Below, in pieces: positions 8,805-42,043 of a stretch of 64,000 nt of DNA. Positions within the stretch are counted from its first letter, which is position 1. Each line of letters opens with the position of its first letter. The DNA is from Adineta vaga. Lineage: Eukaryota > Animalia > Rotifera. Below the pieces are notes generated by a model. The model searched no databases. It was not told the DNA's origin and saw only the letters and a list, made by a program, of their open reading frames with translations. Made by a program: the position numbers and the translations under genes. The DNA is taken from assembly GCA_021613535.1 (NCBI GenBank), contig CP075492.1, forward strand, positions 124,001 through 188,000, read 5' to 3'.

Positions 8805-8864
8805 GAGGGTGTGGGTGTGGGGTGTGGGTGGGTGTTTATCATTAACCCACACCCACACCCACAC
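8805..8864. repeat. Inverted telomere-like tract at a gene-gene junction
   Basis: gagggtgtgggtgtggggtgtgggtgggtg-tttatcattaa-cccacacccacacccacac. Confidence 0.9.
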
Positions 8865-15675: not shown

Positions 15676-15952
15676 TTAATTTTTCAGAATTCTTTCCATT
15701 TGTTTTTTATTTCTTGTTCGTGCTTCTATATTTGATGGTTTAAATGTATTAGATAATTTAGTAAATGTAGCATATAAAGCTACACCTTGTGCTGGCATCA
15801 TAACAACGAATAAAAGAGCAGTCATTAATGCAATAGGTTGTCGACATAATTCTTCTTAAAATTATCAACAAATCAATACAAATTGACATATAAAATAGAC
15901 TTACAAAATCTTTTGGAGATATTGGAGACAATATATATTCAGTTGTTGTCGT
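15676..15952 (-). pseudogene. Last two exons of a membrane protein gene, 5' part missing
   Basis: TTTEYILSPISPKDF / GT-AG intron / EELCRQPIALMTALLFVVMMPAQGVALY...KN*; cut at the telomere-like tract. Confidence 0.6.
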
Positions 15953-15993
15953 TGTGGGTGTGGGGTGCGTTAATGATAAACACCCACACCCTC
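15953..15993. repeat. Inverted telomere-like tract between two decapitated divergent genes
   Basis: tgtgggtgtggggtgcg-ttaatgataaa-cacccacaccctc. Confidence 0.85.
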
Positions 15994-20677: not shown

Positions 20678-20727
20678 GAGGGTGTGGGTGTGGGTGTGGG
20701 TGTGGGTGAGGGTGTGGGTGGGTGTGT
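20678..20727 (+). repeat. Telomere-like (TGTGGG/TGAGGG)n tract
   Basis: gagggtgtgggtgtgggtgtgggtgtgggtgagggtgtgggtgggtgtgt. Confidence 0.9.
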
Positions 20728-21197
20728 TTGAACAAATAAATACCATAACCAGTTTCAACTTATTTTCATAAGTCTATTGATCAATTATCCATCACCACCA
20801 GCGTCATCACTTTTTTTATTCGAATTTTACCAGCGATTGACATTATCACCACAGTCACCGCCGATGTCTTTTCTACGGTTCGACTTGGATTTTGATAAAG
20901 ATGAACGTGCTACTGCTGCTGCTCAAGACAAGGAAGCAGTGGTGGTGATGTTGATGGCGGAGGAAGAAGAGAAGAAGAAGGAGAAGAAGAACTTATTGTT
21001 CTCTTGTTCGGGCAACTTTTAGCTTTTTACTTGAAACATCAAACATCATTCATGACTTTTGTATTGAATTTTTTGTTTTCTTTGGTATTCTTAATTGATT
21101 CAATTGAGAATATATCTATTTGAAAAATAAAAATTTGTACTCAAACTGGATTTAAGATAAGAAGAATACAATTCTTTTCATTTATCTTTAGATAAAA

Positions 21198-23514
21198 ATG
21201 TCTGATAACTTGCAGTCGAACCAACAAGTATCAATTGAACAAGGGATGGAGCATTCAAATGGTGAAGATGCAGCACAATCATGTGCAGTAACTCTACCAA
21301 TTCGAATAAGTGAACGGAGACAAAAGTATGGCATCCGACCGGATGAATATAGCATCATCGAAGATCCTAAAGATTGGAATTCAGATGAAGCAAAAAATGA
21401 AGTAAGCAGTGATGATAGTAGTAGCGTCGTTGTAGAACATAACTCAAAGAAATATTTTATTCTTGTTTATTTTAATAAATAGATGATGATGATGTTGAAG
21501 ATAATGATGAATTATCTTCCTTATCATCAACATCATCATCATCATCATCATCGGCGTATTGGGAGGAGTTCATTAGGGAGTTAAAAGAAAAATATCCCAC
21601 AGAACAGCAATTAGTTCGTGGAATTATGGATGATTATTGTGGTCATCCATTGGAGATCTTACAACAGCAGCTGTTCTTATCTTCAATATTACCGAAGCCA
21701 TCGGATGAAGTGGGTGTGGGTGTGGGTGTGGGTGGGTGGGTGTGGGTGGGTGTGGGCGTGGGTTTATTCATGTTATTCAACACCCATACCCACACACACT
21801 CCCACACCCACACCCACACCCACCCTCACCCACACCCTCACCCACACCCTTACATTCTCAAATATATGATCTCCATAGAATGCATTATCGTTCCAACAAC
21901 GAATTTATTCGGAGTGTATATCGAGGACAAAATCTAAGTCTGGAGCAACTCAACTATCTTATTTCAGTTTGGAAATCAAATAATACAACCACTACAATGA
22001 CTACATTCAGTTCAACATCACTTGATCCTAATATTGCATTGAATTTTGCATCTTCTGCAGATGGTTTAATCTCTTGTCGATTTGAAATTATCATTACTGA
22101 TAGTTATAACAATGAAAAGAAAATAATGGTTCGTCATGAACAAGTGTTCGCTAATATTACTTCACTGTCTGCTATGCCCGATGAACAAGAAGTACTCTTT
22201 TCTCTTGTTACACATTTTCGTAGAGAACATATCGAATATGGAAAAAACCGATCTGATCGTCCTTGGGTACTAATTATACTCGAACTCGTCACAGGCGCAC
22301 AGAGAAACCGTCGTTTTAGTGATTATGATATTATCAATCAGATCGGAATGGTAGAAGATTCACAAATTTACACCGATATCTTGAATATGAAGTCAAATTC
22401 AACAATACGAACTGGACAATATGGTGGAATAATTTAAAACGTCGATGGTCATTAAGCATTGAAAATGAACAACCGTTAAATTTAACATTCTATGATTGTT
22501 TCACCAACGATAAATATTGGTCAAGAAAAGCAATTGAAATGCACAAAAACCTTCTACGTTCTGTTTCTATAATCGAATCAAATCGGTCATCTTTTCCTAT
22601 TTTATTTCATGAATCTAAGGTTTGGGAAACGTTACCCACGAGATGGATCGCCTTGTTCAAAGAATATTTAGAAAAATGTTGCACATTGGACACCAAAGAG
22701 GTCGTTATACTTCTTTCGACGGCTGGACAAATGTATGGAAAGATTGCAGATACGGAATGTGCATTGAAATGCTATAATAAAGCATTGGAACTAAATGCGA
22801 ATGACAAGTACCAGATAAATAACACGATACAAAAGCAAATAAAAATTTTACACAAACCTCCCAAACCCATTCGAACAGCGGCTAGCGAGCGCATACCAGT
22901 ACCAGAAAATCATGAGGAAGAAGTTTTCGAAGTGTATGAAATACAGGAAAAGCTCCAATCAATTTACCGAATTTTCAAAGATTACTCTGCTGACATGTCT
23001 TCTATACAAACGCATCTAACACGAATCAATGTATCGCTTCAGTTTTTTTATCGCTGCGCAAAGGCATATATTATCGACAAGCACTTCGATAACGGATGGA
23101 ACTAACAATCGTTCACCTTCGCGTTGGCGTTACGAGAAGTATATGTATGAATGTGTCTTTATTGGACAATTAAAACATTATTTGCAACTATTGCAGACTA
23201 AATCAATAGCTGTTACCTCCGGTGTTCTTCCTCAAATTGATCGACTGATGAAAAAACTTACCGTGCTCATCGCTATATGTACTGTTTATATATGTATCGA
23301 ATCGGTTAGTGGCGAAGTTAATGTAAACAATATTCATTTTATCAACATGATCAATACAAAAACGAAACAACACATTTTCTTCGATGTTTTCAATAGCGAT
23401 CTTCTAACTGGTTTAAAAGCACTTAAAGAAGAAAGTCAAATTACTGGAAAATCTTTTGTTCCTATTCCAGACGACATGAGAATAGGTCCAACGATTATTG
23501 GTCATTTTTTATAA
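21198..23514 (+). pseudogene. ADP-ribosyltransferase-domain/TPR-like protein pseudogene
   Basis: R-S-E motifs VYRGQ, FSSTS, DEQEVLF; TPR-like ALKCYNKALEL; frameshifts; interrupted by a telomere-like tract. Confidence 0.8.
21710..21850. repeat. Longest inverted telomere-like tract, inside the ART gene
   Basis: ~55-bp G arm, spacer ttattcatgttattcaa, ~70-bp C arm. Confidence 0.9.
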
Positions 23515-26337: not shown

Positions 26338-29300
26338 TTATGTGCATGAGTTTATAAAAATAGATAATTCGTTAGATATATCACTGATTACTGCCAGATC
26401 CAATTTCTTATCATTATTAAAATCACCTGATCTAACAAAATTTGGATGATTATTGACTTTATACTTTTGTTGAGCTCCAAATGTTCCCTTTCCATTACCG
26501 AGAAACACGCTAATAGTATTGTCACCATAATTGGCTGTAACTAAATCCACTTTGTTATCATTGTTCCAATCACCTGATAATATCGAATTTGGATATGTAC
26601 CAGCCTCAAATGTAGATGCAGTATAAAAACTTGCATTTCCATTGTTAAACAATATGGTAATAGTACTTGGGCCGATACCGATCACTGCCAAATCTAGGTT
26701 TGCATCGTTATTAAAATCACCTGATGTCACATCGAATGGATCGTTACCAGCTGCATATTTTCGCTGAGTCTGAAATATACTGTTTCCATTACCGAGCAGT
26801 AAACTAACAGTATTTTCACCTTCATTGACTACTACCAGATCAAGTTTATTATCATTATTAAAATCACCCAATAGTAAACTTCTAGGTCTACTGCCAACCA
26901 TATATTTCAGTTGAATTTGAAATGTTCCATCACCATTGCCAATTAATAAGCTAATAGTATCTTCATTTAGATTAACGGTTGCTAGATCGACCGTGCTATC
27001 ATTATTGAAATCAGACATTATAATAAATCGTGGACCGTTACCGACGGTATATTTCTGTTGAGTTTGAAATGTTCGATTTCCATTATTAAGCAATACACTG
27101 ACAGTATTCTCAGCGAAGTTAGCTGTTGCTAGATCAAGTTTGTTATCATGATTAAAATCACCTGATATCACTGACCATGGTTGATGACCAGTTGTATACT
27201 TAATTTCAATTATAAATGTTCCATCACCATTCCCAAATAGTACACTTATTGTTTGTTCATCGATGATGGCTACTATCAGATCCAATTTATTGTCATGATT
27301 AAAATCACCTGATATTACATAATATGGTCTGCTGCCAACTACATATTTTATTTGAGTCTGAAAAGATCCATTTTGATTACCAAACAGGACGCTGACAGTA
27401 TCCTCTCCTACGTTGGTTGTAACTAGATCTAGGTTGCTATCATTATTAAAATCACCTAATATTAAAGTCATTGGTCCACTACCAGTCGTTAGCAAATCTT
27501 GCGATTGAACCGTTCGATTTCCATTGAGAAGTAAAATACTGATGGAATTACCATATAGATTAGCCGTTGCGAAATCTAGTACTTTATCATGATTGAAGTC
27601 ACCTGATATCACATCGACTGGCGCAAGTCCAATGACATACTTCATTACCATTGAGAAAGTTCCATTGCCACTACCGAGAAATAGGGTGAGTGTATTTTCT
27701 TTTTCAGTACCCACCAAAAGATCCAATTTATTATCATTGTTATAGTCACCGGTTATTATAGAACTTGGAAAAACACCAGCTGCATATTTGTACTGAGTTT
27801 GAAAAGTTGCATTTCCAATGTTGAGCAGCACACTAATAGTGTTGTCAACAGAGTTAGCGACTGCCAAATCCGGTTTACTATCATTGTTAAAATCACCGGA
27901 AATGACTGCAAATGGTGCAGCACCGGTAGCATATTTTATTTGCGTCTGAAAATTACCATCTCTAATACCAAGAAATATACTGAGAGTGTTCTCGCCACGA
28001 TTAACCACTACTAAGTCTAATAATGTATCGTTATTCAAGTCGATTGATATCATATAATAGGGGTTATAGCCTGTATTATATTCACCTTGGATTTGCAAGC
28101 TTCCATTTTCATTACCAAGCATTATACTCATGGTACTTTGACCTTCGTTAGCTACTGCTACGTCCAGTTTACTGTCAAGATTGAAATCACCTGACACCAT
28201 CGAACATGGATTAATCCCGGTCCTGTACTTATATAATCCTTGTAGCGTCCCATCCCCATTACCAAATAGTATGGTCACAGTATCTTCATTGTGACTGACA
28301 ACTGCTACATCAAGTCTTTTATCATTGTCGATGTCACCGGGTGTCAACGATATTGGATTGTTACCAGTGTGATAAGTAGTTGAAGATGTATAAGGATTTG
28401 AACATATATTCACTAAAATTTTATACAAATCAAAAGTATATTAATCAATAGAAGATGTAAAAGAAATATTAAAAAAAAATATACATGTATTGCTTGTATT
28501 AGTGCTTTTACCAGCTCTGGAACCTAAAACACTACCAACAATAATTGCTGCGAGAAGCAGTATTGTTAATGAACTGATCGGAACGAAAAATTTTTTTCGA
28601 CGAAACCATCTCTTTCTAAACAATTGAATAAGAAGGTTTTATCAACAATAAAAAGATTATTCACTCTATTTTTGGATAAAGTAATGCATCTATAGATACA
28701 GAAATCAATGAATTAAAAGTGTTTCAATGAAAATGTTTAAATACCTTTGAATGGGAGCTCAAATAAGCTTTGTTCGGGTATCTTTTGTTTCAGATGAATG
28801 ATGTACATATCAGATTCTTGAGGTAATTTTGCTCGCATTTCCAGATATGTTCCCGGAAGTAAGAGAATTTCGTCTTCGGTAGCATAATGTGAATGAGGAC
28901 GTATGTCTCTACCATTGATAATCTCGATAGAAAGGAGAGTTCTTGTACCAGTATTGCCGAAGAAGAGATTACTCTTCATTACACGAAGATTCGTTGTAGA
29001 TGATGAGAAAGCCCACCATATCTTATGACATCCATCTGGAAAATCGTCACTAATATTTTTTTTTACTCCACGCCAAACAATCTGTGAAGATGCACATGGT
29101 ATTTTGACTAAAGCAGTGAGCAAAAGTTTTAGATATTTAAACCACAACCGTAATGCTTCATGATCAGATTTTGTAAGAGCTTCATTGAGAATGAAATACA
29201 GACTTTTCTGTCTGCTTTCCCATTCCATAGTGTAGAGACGAATCGATGCTGATTCATCGCGAGTCAAGTCATCGGCTGGTACTTGTGCAGTTTCTTTCAA

Positions 29301-29510
29301 TGCTGTCGAAGCATATTTCATTATATTTTCGACAGTAGAGACCAATGTTCTACATGCATCGAGAAGCGAATCACATGTCTCCTGAGCGTAACCATTAAAC
29401 GGACAAATTCTATTCGAACTGTCAGGATGAGATATTCTCGAATTTTCAGAATCCGACAGTAATAGACGAGAATTCACATGCATAGTACCTAATTCAATGT
29501 TTTCACTCAT
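26338..29510 (-). CDS. ART-domain / transmembrane / FG-GAP (VCBS) repeat protein, 4 exons, ~1000 aa
   Basis: Exon 1 ART (IRLYT, VWRG, FSSST, EDEILL); ~25-nt microexon near 28665-28689; TM exon; final exon with ~14 GDFNNDxxLD repeats; GT-AG junctions keep the frame. Confidence 0.85.
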
Positions 29511-30293
29511 TTGATCAACAAACGCTTCACTACTGTTTTTTTCTTCTTATCGGGATGGTTTTATTATCTAGAACAAAAAGACATAAAGAATAGGGAAAAA
29601 GAGCATCATTTCAAAACATATCAACAAGAAAATTAACTAAAGTCTGATGGACAAATATGCATTCTACCGTCTTATTATAGAAAGAAAATATGAAAAATGA
29701 AGAAACCAACATCGAAGAGATTGTTTTTCGCGACACTTTCCTCTTTAATTACCATGCATTTATGATACATATCACGCAAAAAAAGTGTAAATGAGTCTGA
29801 CTCATGTTTATCTTTCGCAATCACAAGAAAGATACGATAAATATCATATATTAAAATAAATGAGGTACCCGTTTTACTACCTTTTTCCTTTTTAGACTAA
29901 GTATGACAGCGTTAATGATGTATTAGAAAAAACGACTCGTTTATTTTTTTTATCTGTAGAAGAAATGCCAGGTGAGACAGCGAACATGAAAGCATCAAAC
30001 TATAGAAAATTTCATTGCGGATATTATTTATCTATTGGAATCAAGGGGGGAAAAGCGATTTATGATTTAGTGATTTGAAATGATTTAAGGTGATTTAAAA
30101 CTCATGTAAATCAAGCTTCACAAGAGGAGTTCAAGATGGTACAAGATTACTATTTTCCTAAAAATACACGTGGATCATATAAATGCTAGTACTTATTTTT
30201 TATTCAGATAGCCTATCAAGTAATTATTGAAATAAGCGGCCAGTCGATATATGTGAAAAGTTAGGAATCTACGGATGCACAAGTCATAGATTT

Positions 30294-30315
30294 GAGGGTG
30301 GGTGGAGTGGGTGAG
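30294..30315 (+). repeat. Short telomere-like tract adjoining a hammerhead ribozyme
   Basis: gagggtgggtggagtgggtgag. Confidence 0.65.
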
Positions 30316-30321
30316 TCAAGC

Positions 30322-30369
30322 ATACCAAGACGCGTTTCGACCTTGCTGAAGGGCCTCATCAGTTGGTAT
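30322..30369 (-). ncRNA. Type I minimal hammerhead ribozyme (PLE-type)
   Basis: Minus strand ATACCAA-CTGATGA-GGCCCTT cagc AAGGTC-GAAAC GC GTC-TTGGTAT: full catalytic core, 7-bp stem I, stem II, palindromic mini stem III. Confidence 0.9.
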
Positions 30370-32551
30370 TGATTATGTAATCACTCAGATGCTCGAAAGA
30401 TCACAAGTAAATTACTTAATCTGCAGAATTTTGAGAACACTGAAGTGTTCTTATAGCAGATATCTATATAACAGTGGTGAGTCAAGCACACACTGAAAAA
30501 AAAAGGAGTTCTACCGAACCTAAAAGGTTTTCTATGCTTCCACTGAACGATTTTAAGTTCAGAAAAGTGAAAAACGTTTCGTGCTTGATATACTAAACTA
30601 TTTTAAGTTCAGCAGGCTCGAGAAGGTTCGGCAGTTGAGAGCAAAAAACCATCTGAAGGTTTTCTATGCGATTCACGAAACCACCGATAGTTCTATAATA
30701 TGTTCACAGAATTATCAGCGGTTTCGCAATCTAACGACAGGTTTCGTCTATCGTCTACCAAACTATTCCTATTTTCGTAGGCCATTTGATGGTTCAGGAG
30801 AATTTACACTATACCATCGGTGGTTCGTTAGTTTTGAAAAAGTTCAGGAGATTTTAAACTAAACCAAACGTGGTTTCGTCCGAGTTGGCCGGAATCAATA
30901 ATAAGTTCACGAATCCTTAAAAGCTCAGTATATTTAATGTAAAATCCTTCGGAGTTTCGTATGTCAAATGAAGGTTCAGTATATTCAATACCGATCGATC
31001 ATGAGCTTCGTACAACATACACGAATCTTTACAAGCTTCAAAAATTCACCAAAAGTTCAGCATGTTCATTACGAAACTCATCATGGCTCTGTATGTCATG
31101 TGCTGAACCAATGACAGACTATGTATGTTTCAAAAAGTTCAGAATAATTCATGCGAAACTTTTTATCACCCGATATTGTTTCTGAAGGTTCGGTTTTATG
31201 TACAAAGAACGATTCATAGTTTCGAATAAATCCATAAAGGTAACGTACAATTTATACAGAACGATTACCAATTCAGTCAGAAAAACGAAGGTTTCGCACA
31301 CATAGTGCCGAACATTCTTTGACTTAGTCAGGCTAGTATTGGTTTTGTGCGTTTTATACGGAAGCAGACATAGTTCTGTCAGTTTCAAGACGGTTTCGTA
31401 CTTTCAGCATAAAACCTTCAGAATCCAGTAACTCGTCTGAAGGTTTCCTTGTCATCACACAGAACGATACATAGCTTCGTATATTTGAACGTAGTTTAGT
31501 ATAACTTCTGCGGAACCATCAATGGTGTCGTATTGTGGCTTAGGGTTGGGCAGATTTCTTGCCTAACAGTCCAAGGTTTCGTATACTCACTCATGGTTTG
31601 GTAAAATTTATACAAAACTATCAAGGGTTCGGTTCAACTTCTGCGGAACTATCAGTAACTTCGTACACTAGCCTAAGTTTTGGTAGGATTTATTCTAAAC
31701 TGTCCAGGGAATCGTAAAGCGAGTAAAGGTTTGGTAGAGGTTCTTCGAAACCATCGACGGTTCCGTACACGTACTCATAGTTTGGCGAAAATTATACGAA
31801 ACTGTCAACTGTTTCTTATCATTACGCTAGGCTCCATAGAGTTTTTGCCAAACGGTCGCTAGCTTCGTACATTGGCCAAAGGTTTGAGAAAAAATGGCCC
31901 TAAACTATGATGAGTTCTGTATGGTTGTAACAGGTTCAGTATAGCTTTCACGAAACAATTCACAATTTCGTAGAACAAGTGGGGGCTTGGAAGAAGTTTC
32001 AACCAACTATCAACTGTTTCATACAGCGATTCAAGGTTTCATAGGATATATTCAAATATATGAACATACTCCTATACTTTGAAGTGGTTCGGTGTAAGTT
32101 GTACGAAACGATGAATGCACTCGTGAGGACTGTTAGAGATCAGCGGACTTTCTACCAAACCATTGACAGGCGTCATTGGTTCATTTATCAAACGGAGAGG
32201 ACTCAGTGAAATGTATGACTATTCGCATCGGCCGACGTCCATTTTTCAATAGACCGTTAGATGAGATCCTATAAGTATCAATGCAGTTTTCATTCAATAT
32301 TCTTTTCTTATATTTTTCACTAGTCTGTCACGTATAGCTTTTCAAATTGGCCGACGTACACTTCTCAATAGGCCGACACGCAATTTAGTAAATGATAATA
32401 TGTTATAAACTACGTTCTATCTTCTTGACTGTTTAGAATCAACGTCAATGGAGTCATTGGGATGGCCAACATCTACTCACACCTTCACAGCACCTTCAAG
32501 TGCTGGTGAAAATATGAGTGGACCTTCAAAAGATACTTTTGAAGAATATAT

Positions 32552-35500
32552 GGGTGAATTGCGCCCGTATTGTACCGTTGACTTTACAACACAAAAGTCA
32601 ATATATCTCAGCTTCTATTCGACAGATTTTTATAATTTTTTTTTTCAAATACTTGTCAGAGTCTATTCAATCTACCAAACAATTATAAAGCTTTTCTATC
32701 TGTCGTGATTATGAAATTTTCCAATGAAAATATAAAAACTCATGCTTTATGGCGCCATCTATCGACGAAAAACGCCTCACCAGTCTCAAATTTTGATTGG
32801 ATAATTATAATTTTTTTCAACGGTTTTGTAGTTAAGACTTTCCTCTTTCTAATGGTATAAGTTGATGGCAGGGTTGAAATCGATTTGAATATCAAATCTT
32901 GCAAAAACTATGCCGACATTCACTTCGATCGTTTTTGTCACGTCAGATTAAATTCGATCTATAAAAGCTAAATTGAAAGCAAACTAAAATTTATTTTTTA
33001 CGTTAAATAGCTGAAGGGTCGAGAAATATTTTGATAAAAAAAATTTCTAAAAGCCTTATAAATTCAATGAAAAAAGTCGAATTTAGGGACGAGAAGTAGT
33101 CATTGTCGTACTAAATGTCACGTCAGATTTTCTATTTTGTCTGTTTGATATCTCGAGAACTACTCATTATTTTTCTCTAATTTTTTTACCATTTTTAACT
33201 AACTATGAGCTAAAACTATGATAAAAATTTCAGCTCTGAAAAACGTACCGTTGAAGAGAAAACGCACTTTTACTTCAAAAATGTCACGTCAGATTTTTTC
33301 GTAAGAAAATGTCACGTCAGATTGAGTCAACAAGTATTTTACGAAAATAAATATTTTGTCTACCTTGTTGAATAGAAAATAGACGCTCTATGGCAGAGGA
33401 ATGTTAATAAATTAATCAATCAAGATATTTGCCTTCATATCATCATAGCATTGGAGAACACATAGAAAACTTGAACTATTGATAAAGGCTTATGTATACA
33501 TTTATGCATGTAAATATTTCATTTCTGATCAACTTTAAGATTAAATACTATTTTCAATGAGCTCAAAAAAAACAGCAAAGAGCGCAGCTGCTGTGTATAG
33601 TCAAAAATATCGTGAAAAAATTCGAATGAAACGATTACAAAGTAAAAACTTCGATAAACAGTATAAAAAAAGCGTAGCAGCACGACAAGCATTATATCGA
33701 GCAAAAAAGAAACAACAACAACAACAACAATTACCAACTATATCAACATCGTTAACAAAATCTGATGTTCGGAAGATTGAAGGCATTCATCGTCGTCGAG
33801 TGAATACAGCAAAATTACATTCAGAGATACGTAAATTACAAAATTTAACTAATCAATTACAAATAGAGAATAAAAAATTAAAAGCACAATCAGTGCCTTC
33901 TGCATCATCAGCATCACAACAAACCATAACAAATAACACAACAATTACATCACCATCAAAAATTCTTCTCCAAAATCTCAGTCCAAATGCTAAAGGTCGT
34001 GCCGTCGCACGTATGATGCTGCAAAAGCCTGATTTACCACGGGGTAGTAATAAAGCTATTCGAGATAAATTTGGAATCAATGTAAGTTGTTGATCATTTT
34101 CTTATATCTCTATTATTGAGAATTTTTTTCATCCAGTTATCAAATCAAAATTTACCATTAACAACAACGACTACAACTTCAAGAGAACTCGGTTATATTA
34201 TTGAAGAATTTCTAAATGATGATGAGATAACTCGATTGGCACCTGATAAAAAAAAGTCATTGATGGTAAACAGGTTCGATTTCTGTTAAGTCATTTGATA
34301 AATCTGCATCAGAGATTTATATGCGAAATGAAGTATGATTGCTCGTATTCAACTTTCACACGACACATCCCATCCTATATTATCTCACCGAAACCGAGTG
34401 AATGGGGAACCTGTCTTTGTATGACATGTTTAAACCCGCAATTAAAAGTGGAAAGACTTCATCAGTTGAAAAATGTCCAACCTATTTTGCACAATTTGTC
34501 AACTTTAATGACAAATGACTTATCATCAATCATTGACGATGAAAGTAAGATTGAAGAGATATTAAATGAGCTAAAACTATTAGAAACGGAAACGTTTATG
34601 ATTACTTATGTGCAATGGATTAAGAAGAAAAGTGAACAAAGCAGTGGTTTACATTCGACGAAAACAACGATTACAGATAAAATGAATACCTTTTGCATGA
34701 AATTCACTGAAGAAATATCCGTAAGTATTTCAAAACAGGAACAGAGGAGGGACAAAGTATCTGTATCATTCATTATCAATTACTTATTATTTAGAAATTT
34801 CAAGAACACATGAAATTCGTTCGTGCTCAATTTAGAGGTGCAAAATTACTTCGACAATCAGCATTACGGGATGATAATGTAATAACTTTACAAATTGACT
34901 GGTCAGAGAACTATCATCTAAAACAAGCGAGAGAGGAACGCTGTAAGTTGTCATAAAAACTCGACTGATATCATTTAAACATACTCTTAATGTTATTCTT
35001 TATTTATAGCTGCTTATTATTATGAGCAACATATTTCAATAGCGACTGGATATGTATGGCAGAAGGATAATTGTTTTAGTTTTGGGTGTCTGTCTGATGA
35101 AACAAGTCATTTATCAGAGAGTACATGGGCAGCTATTGATGACCTATTAAATGAATTGTTAGATAAAAAAGCTGCAAAACAAATTACTGAACTAAATATC
35201 ATATCTGATTCTCCATCTAGTCAATACAGAAACAAAACCACCATCTACTTTTTGAAAAATTATGCTACTAATAAACAACTTACAATGAGATGGTTATTTC
35301 TGGAAAGTGGACATGGTAAAGGTGTGCCAGATGGAGTTGGCTCTACCCTTAAACGATTATTTGATGATGTAATTCGATTGAATCCGGATGAAGTATTCAA
35401 TGGTGTTGATGATTTATTACATAAAATAAAGGATTCAACAACTATTCGACTTTATTCTTATACGAAAAAAGACATCGATGCACTCAAAGAAAATATTCCA

Positions 35501-36172
35501 TCACTAACAACAGTTAAAGGTACATCTCTGTTTCACGAAATAATTGCAAAACCAAATGGACAAATCTTTGCCAAAAATAGATCAGATGAACAAGAAACTT
35601 TAATAAAAATCAACTTTTAGGATCTTCATTAATAATCGAGACAGTATGGTTGATCCTGTTTTTTTTCTATTCAAATCAACTTTTTTTGTGTACTATCAAT
35701 AATGTCTTTCTCAGATACGTTCTCGTTGTAAAAAATTTTTAATGAAATAAACATTGACATTATCGTTGAAGATTCTCGTTCTTATTGTTGTCTCGAAGAA
35801 ACGTTATCAAAAAAAGACAGAAGCTACTCAGTGTATCTCTCAGAAAAATATGTTTTGACAACTATAATAATGATAGTATATGATGATATCTGATTGCTAA
35901 AAACTTTTTTTCAAAATAATTCGATTGAAATATAAACTTAAGGTAAATATTTTTAATTAGAAATTTCGTTTTACCGACCAACATGAAGTTATTCATCTAT
36001 TTCAAAATGGTTGATTTTCTCGTAAACAAAAAACTTGGTAGTTGGGAAAATGCTCAAAGTATATACAACAAATATAGCTCTATCGAACGTGCAGGTCAAA
36101 TTTCTTCTCTATTTACTTTTATTTTTTTTCCGTTTTTTTTCTCGAACGGTACAATACGGGCGCAATTCACCC
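32552..36172 (+). mobile_element. Sola2-like DNA transposon
   Basis: Perfect 28-bp TIR GGGTGAATTGCGCCCGTATTGTACCGTT; ATAT 4-bp TSD; repeated TGTCACGTCAGATT motifs in the left arm. Confidence 0.85.
33557..35620 (+). CDS. Sola2-like DDD transposase, multi-exon, one apparent frameshift
   Basis: CLCMTCLN, IDWSENY, SDSPSSQYRN, GHGKGVPDGVG motifs; introns at ~34082, ~34721, ~34943; -1 shift in the A8 run near 34250. Confidence 0.8.
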
Positions 36173-36593
36173 ATATTCTGAAGTGGCTGAATACGGAGCC
36201 TGTAGGATGATAATTAAAAAAGGGGTGTTTCACTAAATTAAAAGGAGGATTGATGCAGAGAAGGTTTCGCAGCTATGGATTATCACCGAACCTTTTTTAA
36301 GATAGATTCAGAAGGTTCTGTACAGTACCTGTGGTACGAAACCTTTTTCCTCATCATGAAAAAAATTTTCGTAGTAAACCTTTGCTACGGACTCTCAGTT
36401 CTCAAATTTTTTACTAAGGTTTTATCCGGAACCTTTATTGTACTAAACCAAAAAAGGATCGTCCCGTGTATCGGCGGAAAGATCCTTTTTTGGTTCGGTA
36501 AAACTCCTTTTTTTTCAGTGTGCATGTACACCTTAAGTTGCACAAAATCAATTCCTTTCAGTAGAGGGGTTAGCAACGCCCACGTTGCGTTAT

Positions 36594-37181
36594 TTATTCT
36601 TTAAGAGAAAACCAATCTTGAATAACTAAATGTGTTATTGAACTAAATTGTTCTGTTTGAAATGGTACTTCTAATGAATTCGATTCTTCTTTTATTGATA
36701 TTTTAAAATATTTTAATGAAGATAATCGAAATATTTGTTGGTATAAACAAGTTTTATTCCAGATAAAATAATTACAAAATAAAATTAATGAAGAAAGGTT
36801 AGATAAGAATAATAGACTTTTACAAAGATCTTCTAAATCTCTTGTTAAAATATCATCAATAATTAATGTTTGAAGATGAGTGAATTGTGAAATAACTGAA
36901 GGAGATGAAAAAAAGAATTGAATAACAAATGGATTTGATAAATGAAGTGATTCAATTCGATGTTGATTTAGAAGAATTAGATTTTTATAATAAAAATTAA
37001 CTATTGGTTTTGATATTGAACCAAGATGAATTTGAATTGGTAAAGTTGAATTAACGAAAAGATTTTGAAAACGTTGATTAAGATTAACAAAAATTGCATA
37101 AGATTGAAAATAATCAAAATATTCAAATATTTCATAAACTATTTCATTTGCAGGATCTTCAAACTTCACTTTTTTTATCAT
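36594..37181 (-). pseudogene. F-box/LRR-like protein, 3'-truncated
   Basis: FEDPANEIVYEIFEYFD...NLNQRFQNL, LRR-like repeats; stops abruptly next to the mobile-element block. Confidence 0.7.
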
Positions 37182-37789
37182 TATATCGATGAAATAACAA
37201 AAAATGATAGGATAACACCCACTGTCTTTGTAAAAAACTAATAAAACAACTTGGAACAAAATATGTGAAATCAACGTGTGTTGTTTTTTTCCTTCTTCTG
37301 ATATACATACTACAAACAAGAAAAATGTTTTTTTTTCCTCTGAATTGATTATGTATGACTCATCTTGTGAGAGGGACTGAGGGAGATAATACGTTTGCAA
37401 TACACAAAATTATGAATCATTGTTTTATTAGGGTTTAAAAACCTAGAATAAAATAACTAATACATTATTTATGTTTCGCTATAAACGAATGGTTGAACTT
37501 TGATCCATCACACAATCGATAGATATATTTTGCGATTAAATTGCATTTTTTTATCTTTTCATATAAAAATGAATCAAAACTTTCGATTGGTAATCAATGT
37601 AAAAATACTATTTTTTTCGGTAATTATATCTGTTTATACAAACGACTTCAAGATGACGACGTGCATGAATAATCGTTGACATTTGAATCTAAGCAAATTA
37701 GAAAGTAATTCCGAAGAATACAATTCGATATTGTTCAATTCTGTCTTTCAATAGTCTATTAGAATGTCCTAGTGTCAAAATAAATGAAA

Positions 37790-40790: not shown

Positions 40791-42043
40791 TTTAGAATTC
40801 GAGTACTCGAGTTTTAAACTATTCAACTTCTAAATTATAGCAGGGTAACTGAGGTTGTGGAACTCAAATCTAATGTTAGTTTTTACTAATTAGCGTGTGC
40901 TAGCAACTTACTAATAACTAATTAGTAAAAGTTACTATTTTGCATGAAGCTTCACCAAACGGTAGTCGATGTCGACGAACTCTAATCTGATGTTAGCTTT
41001 TACCAGTTAGTAACTGTTAGTAGCCTTATAGTAACTTATCAGTAAAAACTACCATTTTGCATAAAACCTGACCAAAAGGTAATTGATGTCGGAAAAATCG
41101 AATCTGATGTTAGTTTTACTAACTATTAGATACTAGTAGCTCGAGGCGAAGGGTGTGGGTGAAGGCAAAATACAAAGTTCGGGTGAGGGTGAGGGTGAGC
41201 GTGAGGGTGCGGGTGCTAGCAGAACACGAAGTGAGGGTGAGGGCAAAGCATAAAGTGAGGGTGATGGAGTTGAACGGCAAAATACAAGCAATTGTGCTTG
41301 AAATATTCTTCGTTACGTGACGTCGTTCCTAATACTCTAAAAAATAGACTTTGAAAGCATAATAACAGAAGTATTCAGTTCAGAAGTTTCCAAGTTGAAT
41401 AGCGTTAAACTCGAATACTCGAGCTCGGTTAAATCTTATAGAAAGTCATTGTTCATATATTCCTCGAAAAAGATACGCACGGAAAAACCGCGAACGCACG
41501 AACATACACTCATTTTTTTATAAGATTTCCCCGACGGATAAACCTCCTTTCATTGGAGAAAATAGCTAGTCTAATTTACCAACTCGCCACTAACTGGTTA
41601 AAACTAACACCGGATTCGAGTTCTTAAACCTCAATTACCTCTTGGTCAAGCTTTGCGTAAAACAGTAATTTTTACGAATATAATACTACTAAGTTACTAA
41701 CTAGTTACTTATCTGTAAAACTAACATCAGACTCGATTTTTCCGACATCAATTACCTTTTGGTCAGGTTTTATGCAAAATGGTAGTTTTTACTGATAAGT
41801 TACTATAAGGCTACTAACAGTTACTAACTGGTAAAAGCTAACATCAGATTAGAGTTCGTCGACATCGACTACCGTTTGGTGAAGTTTCATGCAAAATAGT
41901 AACTTTTACTAATTAGTTATTAGTTAGTTGCTAGTACACGCTAATTAGTAAAAACTAACATTAGATTTGAGTTCCACAACCTCAGTTACCCTGCTATAAT
42001 TTAGAAGTTGAAAAGTTTAAAACTCGAGTACTCGAATTCTAAA
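40791..42043. mobile_element. Foldback-like element with ~330-bp inverted arms
   Basis: 40791-41119 is the near-perfect reverse complement of 41715-42043; arms are built of ~117-bp subunits. Confidence 0.85.
41143..41266 (+). repeat. Interrupted (TGAGGG)n tract inside the foldback spacer
   Basis: gggtgtgggtga...gggtgagggtgagggtgagcgtgagggtgcgggtg...gtgagggtgaggg. Confidence 0.7.

Follow-up and report, generated by a model that had tools for sequence, protein, structure and literature searches.

In the endonuclease (EN)-deficient Athena elements and the giant Terminons of Adineta vaga, the Penelope-like elements (PLEs) closest to the locus analysed here, a minimal type I hammerhead ribozyme stands immediately before a short telomeric stretch in reverse complement, (ACACCC)n or (TCACCC)n, as summarized in reviews (PMC6431247, PMC8557442, PMC7761336). 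According to the same summaries this tail permits attachment to G-rich overhangs (PMC6431247, PMC8557442), and copies whose 5' parts are cut off by telomeric repeats stand in head-to-tail arrays (PMC6431247, PMC8557442, PMC7761336). Our comparison with Athena/Terminon elements (Gladyshev & Arkhipova 2007; Arkhipova et al. 2017) is made through reviews by the same authors and covers what those reviews relate. The telomere repeat of A. vaga is TGTGGG (PMC7943196). Hammerheads are also carried by the pseudo-LTRs of endonuclease-bearing (EN+) PLEs, for which a loopless palindromic helix III permitting dimers is on record (Cervera & de la Pena 2014, as cited in PMC7761336); minimal PLE hammerheads cleave as dimers (PMC7761336). 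Metazoan non-LTR retrozymes, for which dependence on PLE/Terminon reverse transcriptase (RT) has been proposed, are small (∼150-300 nt) non-coding units with a type I hammerhead, and features of their own are canonical hammerheads with loop-loop contacts, long tandem arrays and stable circular RNAs (Cervera & de la Pena 2020, PMC7229834; PMC7761336).

The window (the whole stretch of DNA that was analysed, 64 000 nt) covers C3:124001-188000, where C3 is its contig; the genome-wide searches reported below cover 100.8 Mb in six contigs. It has a G+C content of 31% and contains more than 10 tracts of the (TGTGGG)n type, on both strands. Amid these tracts, 154 kb from the near end of the 20.35-Mb contig, lies the locus at 30294-30488, which is very probably the 3'-terminal module of an EN-deficient PLE of the Athena/Terminon kind, left as a stump of ∼180 bp. 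The kind of element is already known, being the published Athena/Terminon 3' end in A. vaga. As in the elements described in the reviews (PMC6431247, PMC8557442), a minimal type I hammerhead directly precedes a reverse-complement telomeric stretch, and attachment to a G-rich tract, 5' truncation and a head-to-tail arrangement are shared as well, as perhaps is a subtelomeric setting; furthermore, close relatives of the copy lie downstream of a Penelope-like RT, one of them (L082) with an open reading frame (ORF) that has no endonuclease domain. Unlike them, the window copy is only ∼180 bp long, has no ORF and has a body that matches no RT-bearing copy; it is internal, has the opposite orientation for the contig end to which it is nearer, and its tract is irregular. 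The likeness to Athena/Terminon elements, suggested in the preliminary description of this stretch, is borne out by the combination of hammerhead and reverse-complement telomeric tail, in the orientation expected for priming from a G-rich 3' end.

The hammerhead occupies 30322-30369 of the minus strand and, as had been noticed from the sequence at the outset, it is a minimal type I hammerhead whose core and helices are intact (it is identified by Rfam family RF00163, by a family model, R1, and by covariation among 20 copies, see below). Helix I has 7 bp and pairs 30363-30369 with 30322-30328; the CUGAUGA box follows at 30356-30362; helix II has 4 bp (30352-30355 with 30339-30342) and a loop of 9 nt; GAAA is at 30335-30338; helix III is a loopless palindrome, ACGCGU, at 30330-30335; and cleavage is predicted after GUC, between 30329 and 30328. 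All the parts that define type I are present, namely CUGAUGA, GAAA, a cleavable GUC and helices I and II, with the structure open at helix I. The match to RF00163 has 20.3 bits (E-value of 0.036 on 601 nt, in a relaxed local scan), below the gathering score of 34, which is why an Rfam scan of the whole window at the gathering threshold is blank. A low score is expected because this variant (the minimal PLE type) has no helix III loop, and among the 73 of ∼10 000 genomic candidates that were scored, the best copies reach 33.6 bits at most. Model R1 gives the window copy 66.1 bits, with the window sequence itself included in R1. The minimum free energy (MFE) fold of the monomer is not a hammerhead and is not better than those of shuffled sequences (z of −0.86); the homodimer is predicted to be 7 kcal/mol more stable than two monomers. 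If the window hammerhead cleaves at all, it would act as a dimer, since its helix III is a 6-nt palindrome without a loop. The check by Infernal and RNA folding proposed in the preliminary description yields a match to the family that stays under the gathering score and a monomer fold that is not that of a hammerhead.

A linker of 6 nt, GCUUGA on the minus strand (30316-30321), separates helix I from the C-rich tail of the element, and related linkers are present in its closest genomic copies. The tail is the minus strand of a telomere-like G-rich tract of 22 nt on the plus strand (30294-30315), irregular and of the GGGTG type, and it starts 13 nt after the cleavage site. A telomere-like tract just past the hammerhead had been described before, at a distance of 7 nt; the tract is confirmed and the linker is counted here as 6 nt. 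On the other side of the ribozyme lies a non-coding body of ∼105 nt (30370-30473, minus strand), which is almost unique in the genome: a genome search with the unit gave no match beyond the ribozyme, except for a block of 25 nt of the body that is common to the window unit and to a short unit at C3:16274 (L053) and is found nowhere else in the genome. No ORF was found in the unit at 30294-30488. The body is followed by a second, partial terminus (30474-30488, minus strand), which consists of the linker and CTCACC, then AC; 13 nt of it are a direct repeat of 30310-30322. A search of the whole window for this 13-mer finds just these two positions, 30310 and 30476 (0.02 occurrences are expected by chance), and a repeat at these two positions around a unit of ∼166 bp was reported correctly in the preliminary description.

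The hammerhead belongs to a family. A strict core pattern has 35 matches in the genome versus one for a reversed control; most of the 35 lie no more than a few Mb from a contig end. They make up two sets of copies: about half have the helix I strand, the linker and a C-rich telomere complement, and the others have no tail. Ribozyme and tail are also seen at C3:648480. For the tail-bearing set, a pattern made of the 3' half of the ribozyme, the linker and CTCAC has 11 matches in the genome versus none for the control. The pattern permitted 11-19 nt between the cleavage site and CTCAC; the actual distance stays at 12-14 nt in every one of the 11 matches, although these come from subfamilies whose helices differ. 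In an alignment of 20 copies, 82% of the cells pair, versus 72% in shuffles and 17-40% when the partners are slid, and at eight pairs both partners have changed. Covariation in these copies extends to helices I and II and to the palindromic helix III; the central pair of the palindrome is CG in eight copies, GC in eight and UA in two, and because it switches between these states we take the palindrome itself to be conserved. A conserved palindrome fits the dimeric mode of cleavage of minimal PLE hammerheads. These observations decide another alternative, that a chance match to the hammerhead consensus happens to stand beside a chance C-rich run. The score under the gathering threshold and the monomer fold that does not exceed its shuffles speak for such a coincidence, which is nevertheless refuted by the excess over the control, the conserved linker and spacing and the covariation, so that we give it practically no credence.

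The tail-less second set is a different repeat, which is found in inverted pairs ∼390 nt apart and has GUA as its cleavage triplet (e.g. C3:2140572/2140966 and C5:1000424/1000814; L057 and L072). This family is probably an endonuclease-bearing PLE, as inverted pairs at such a distance are typical of EN+ PLE insertions, and its presence in the genome lends something to the idea that the window locus preserves part of the pseudo-LTR of a canonical EN+ PLE, inserted by its own endonuclease, with the C-rich stretch a coincidental target. That reading is nonetheless very improbable. The inverted-pair family differs from the window copy in helix I and in the downstream sequence and has no C-rich tail; the window copy groups with the tail-bearing set, with which it has the linker and the spacing in common, and it has neither an inverted partner nor a tandem ORF. 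Compared with the EN+ pseudo-LTR hammerheads on record, which it resembles in helix III, it lacks a pseudo-LTR, a GIY-YIG endonuclease ORF and any partner in tandem or inverted arrangement, and it does have a telomeric tail. The mention of a Penelope pseudo-LTR in the preliminary description is therefore not upheld: a second ribozyme and an ORF are both absent from 30294-30488, and the second repeat is only 13 nt long. Other copies of the hammerhead do exist, however, contrary to the outcome by which that description would have been overturned, and about half of them carry the telomere-complementary tail.

Two of the relatives lead to the RT. Upstream of one of the closest relatives (C1:16343822; L047/L082) there is an RT ORF on the same strand, which ends ∼720 nt before the ribozyme. 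It contains the motifs YLPKAHK...PLRPIIS and YIDDIF, which we take to be Penelope-like; its match to the Pfam family RVT_1 is sub-threshold only. The encoded RT is 64-78% identical to bdelloid proteins (from Rotaria and Adineta), and the ORF stops where these homologues stop, with no endonuclease domain. This identity and the TGTGGG-type tracts mark the genome as that of a bdelloid rotifer. A sequence search of PDB with this RT relative gave weak generic RT matches only, which do not indicate the clade. In the second relative (L055), RT sequence is present as a diverged fragment, located ∼280 nt upstream of the ribozyme. At the first of these loci, an Athena-like RT ORF is seen as two 5'-truncated copies in tandem on one strand (1575-4026 of L082, i.e. 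C1:16344574-16347025), with a single hammerhead terminus downstream. In the window, a tblastn search found no RT or other Athena/Terminon ORF, so the window copy is either a truncated stump or non-autonomous. Its ∼105-nt body has no match among the RT-bearing copies, and its tie to an autonomous parent is accordingly through the terminal module only. To the earlier question of whether copies abut telomeric tracts or RT ORFs, the genome search gives the following answer: other copies of the ribozyme do abut such tracts, an RT is found upstream of two close relatives, and the body has no other matches save the 25 nt.

On the left, the G-rich tract abuts the 5' part of a MITE-like element with terminal inverted repeats (TIRs), here called M (30042-30293, plus strand), which ends exactly where the tract starts. 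The TIR and the first ∼250 nt of M match other genomic copies. Two of these (L075 and L076), whose upstream flanks are different, extend by over 200 nt beyond the position equivalent to 30293; the missing continuation of M was sought in the window and was not found. Because M stops at 30293 while these copies continue, we regard the left flank as a broken transposon capped by the tract. A minus-strand ORF just to the left of the locus (28737-29510) encodes an NAD:arginine ADP-ribosyltransferase domain (PF01129, E-value of 2e-7).

On the right, the partial terminus adjoins a TIR DNA transposon, B, with a span of ∼6 kb (30489-36522). B itself is ∼2.4 kb long and non-autonomous, with TIRs of 29 nt that are 93% complementary, and it has many genomic copies, with 66-87% identity and unrelated flanks. 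Nested in it is a TIR element of 3.6 kb with perfect TIRs of 32 nt (32548-36176), than which B is older; the ORFs of the nested element (33557-35620) have no Pfam match. The 2 bp on either side of B (CA and TG) have decayed so far that they neither establish nor rule out a TA duplication. To the right of B there is no hammerhead and no continuation of the second terminus. As to the junction between B and the terminus, B may have inserted later into a second copy that was longer, or the terminus may have been joined to an end cut by transposase. The minus-strand genes to the right of B were considered as Terminon ORFs and ruled out, as they have no Pfam matches and their paralogues have no consistent ribozyme downstream. 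One of them, with its 3' end beyond B (36594-37400, minus strand), resembles F-box/LRR-type genes on visual inspection and is a member of a large multigene family. Further to the right, 40834-42000 is a near-perfect inverted repeat with arms of 286 nt that are 99% complementary, made of tandem units of 117 nt.

Read along the plus strand, truncated transposon DNA gives way to the G tract and this in turn to the reverse-complemented element, which is the orientation expected for priming by the G strand. This order of truncated M, G tract and element fits a cDNA that was primed from a telomere-healed break and later became internal. From the structure we infer the following course of events. A break would have arisen inside M, and telomerase would have added ∼22 nt to the broken end. 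The 3' end of the element's RNA would be made up of the minimal hammerhead fold, a short linker and a C-rich tail that matches the telomere repeat in reverse complement, and by this tail such an Athena-type RNA could anneal to the exposed G-rich 3' end. An Athena RT, supplied in trans, may then have extended the DNA end by copying the RNA, and the product strand would consist of the G tract followed by the reverse complements of the linker, the ribozyme and the body. Copying would have halted after ∼166 nt, through 5' truncation or because the template was short, and a second priming or a template switch might have added the first 13-16 nt of another terminus. Finally, the end would have been rejoined to other DNA, with the TIR transposon B now at the junction. 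Priming on a telomere-capped internal break, as proposed in the preliminary description, is in keeping with M being cut exactly at the tract; the break itself is deduced from this structure.

The orientation of the copy limits how it may have arisen. The G strand at 30294-30315 is directed away from the near contig end, and serial addition at the present end predicts the opposite. The locus is therefore not a simple addition at the present telomere, and since its orientation is opposite to that of serial end addition, internalization or inversion must be assumed. In the genome as a whole, ∼11 out of 18 tail-bearing copies (by our reading of the pattern matches) have the orientation expected for their chromosome arm, and the remainder, including the window copy, have the opposite one. 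A further point against the reading as an Athena/Terminon stump is the tract itself, which is irregular and only 22 nt long.

A second, decayed Athena-type 3' end is found in the window at 20680-20775 (minus strand), in the same orientation as the copy at 30294. It consists of a G tract of 46 nt (20680-20725) followed by the reverse complement of the 3' half of a hammerhead (∼20740-20775), in which, by eye, helix II, GAAAC and the helix I strand are kept and the CUGAUGA box is lost. The half has a weak partial match to model R1 (10.1 bits, E-value of 1.7) and resembles the type of another genomic copy (L051a). A scan of the whole window with R1, with filters off, revealed this decayed half and no other intact hammerhead. 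No ribozyme was found beside the telomeric tracts of the window other than those at 30294 and 20680. The suggestion, made beforehand, that the hammerhead would tie the tracts of this stretch to real exposed 3' overhangs gains a second case in the decayed end.

Several of these other tracts have a structure of their own. Three are two-armed, with a G-rich run, a short spacer and a C-rich run (1590-1648, 8807-8860 and 21712-21849); they have the look of two capped ends fused head to head, and no hammerhead was found beside them. One short spacer, TTATCATTAAC, occurs beside telomeric tracts twice, ∼7 kb apart (8836-8842 and ∼15950-15990). In addition, GA/GGGTG is the start of many G tracts, in the window and at genomic loci, and CCCTC followed by AAG or AAA is the end of many C-rich tails, in unrelated flanks. 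Such recurrent ends suggest that de novo repeat addition favours one register, or that the junctions themselves are subject to a preference.

The 13-nt redundancy at the two ends of the unit might be explained in another way, by a dedicated non-autonomous element of ∼157-177 nt, a retrozyme-like hammerhead unit that borrows the Athena machinery and whose tandem or circular RNA would be primed internally, at CUCACC, by a telomeric overhang and copied through a little over one turn. In rotifers, small retrozyme-like repeats that carry type I hammerheads have been reported (PMC7229834), and it has been argued that retrozymes are non-autonomous PLE derivatives (bioRxiv 10.64898/2026.07.22.740005). 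Two consecutive termini are indeed seen at three loci, 166 nt apart in the window, 177 nt apart at C3:19.516 Mb (L038) and 157 nt apart at C3:16.2 kb (L053), none of the three units has an ORF, and the 25-nt body block is restricted to the window unit and that of L053. These hints of a tandem arrangement at related loci, together with the small size, the lack of coding sequence and the type I hammerhead, are what the window copy has in common with non-LTR retrozymes. The upstream ribozyme is still there at L038 and L053, which have two ribozymes each, while the second copy in the window amounts to 13 nt; tandem units each with a hammerhead, as in a retrozyme, are thus not found at the window locus, which has one minimal ribozyme in 1.08 units.

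We nevertheless consider such a dedicated unit unlikely, if worth keeping in mind. It is represented by just two or three loci, whose bodies are otherwise not significantly alike (for the window unit and the unit of L038, a z of 1.5, with 40 out of 500 shuffles as good). The ribozyme cores of L038 and L053 are mutated. In prediction, the RNA of the 166-nt unit folds no better than its shuffles (z of −0.43) and is not unusually stable, unlike the rod-like circles of retrozymes, and a telomere-complementary tail like that of the window copy is not reported for retrozymes. Moreover, consecutive tracts in other copies are spaced 69-535 nt apart; the lengths of 157-177 nt may be part of this spread of truncation lengths, and a serial addition of truncated copies yields an identical structure. 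At the window locus, an extreme 5' truncation of an autonomous copy and a dedicated non-autonomous unit of ∼160 nt are indistinguishable. A more specific version, to which we assign a distinctly low probability, takes the units of 166, 157 (C3:16.2 kb) and 177 nt (C3:19.516 Mb) for a small retrozyme-like partner of Athena with a telomere-complementary priming site of its own: overhangs would prime on its circular or multimeric hammerhead RNA, and the copies would come to slightly more than one unit. If true, this partner would tie the biology of retrozymes directly both to telomere-targeted reverse transcription and to the way in which bdelloids heal internal breaks.

If the locus is the 3'-terminal stump of an Athena/Terminon-kind element, as we think very probable, the window copy is a clean example of the published mechanism by which telomere-seeking PLEs attach. 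The distance of 12-14 nt from the cleavage site to the tail, like the palindromic helix III with its covariation, provides a constraint for testing how the ribozyme fold and the tail cooperate. The tracts at 30294 and 20680 would then be evidence of former real 3' ends that could be extended by an RT, and together they favour a view of the window as a patchwork of breaks that were healed and rejoined.
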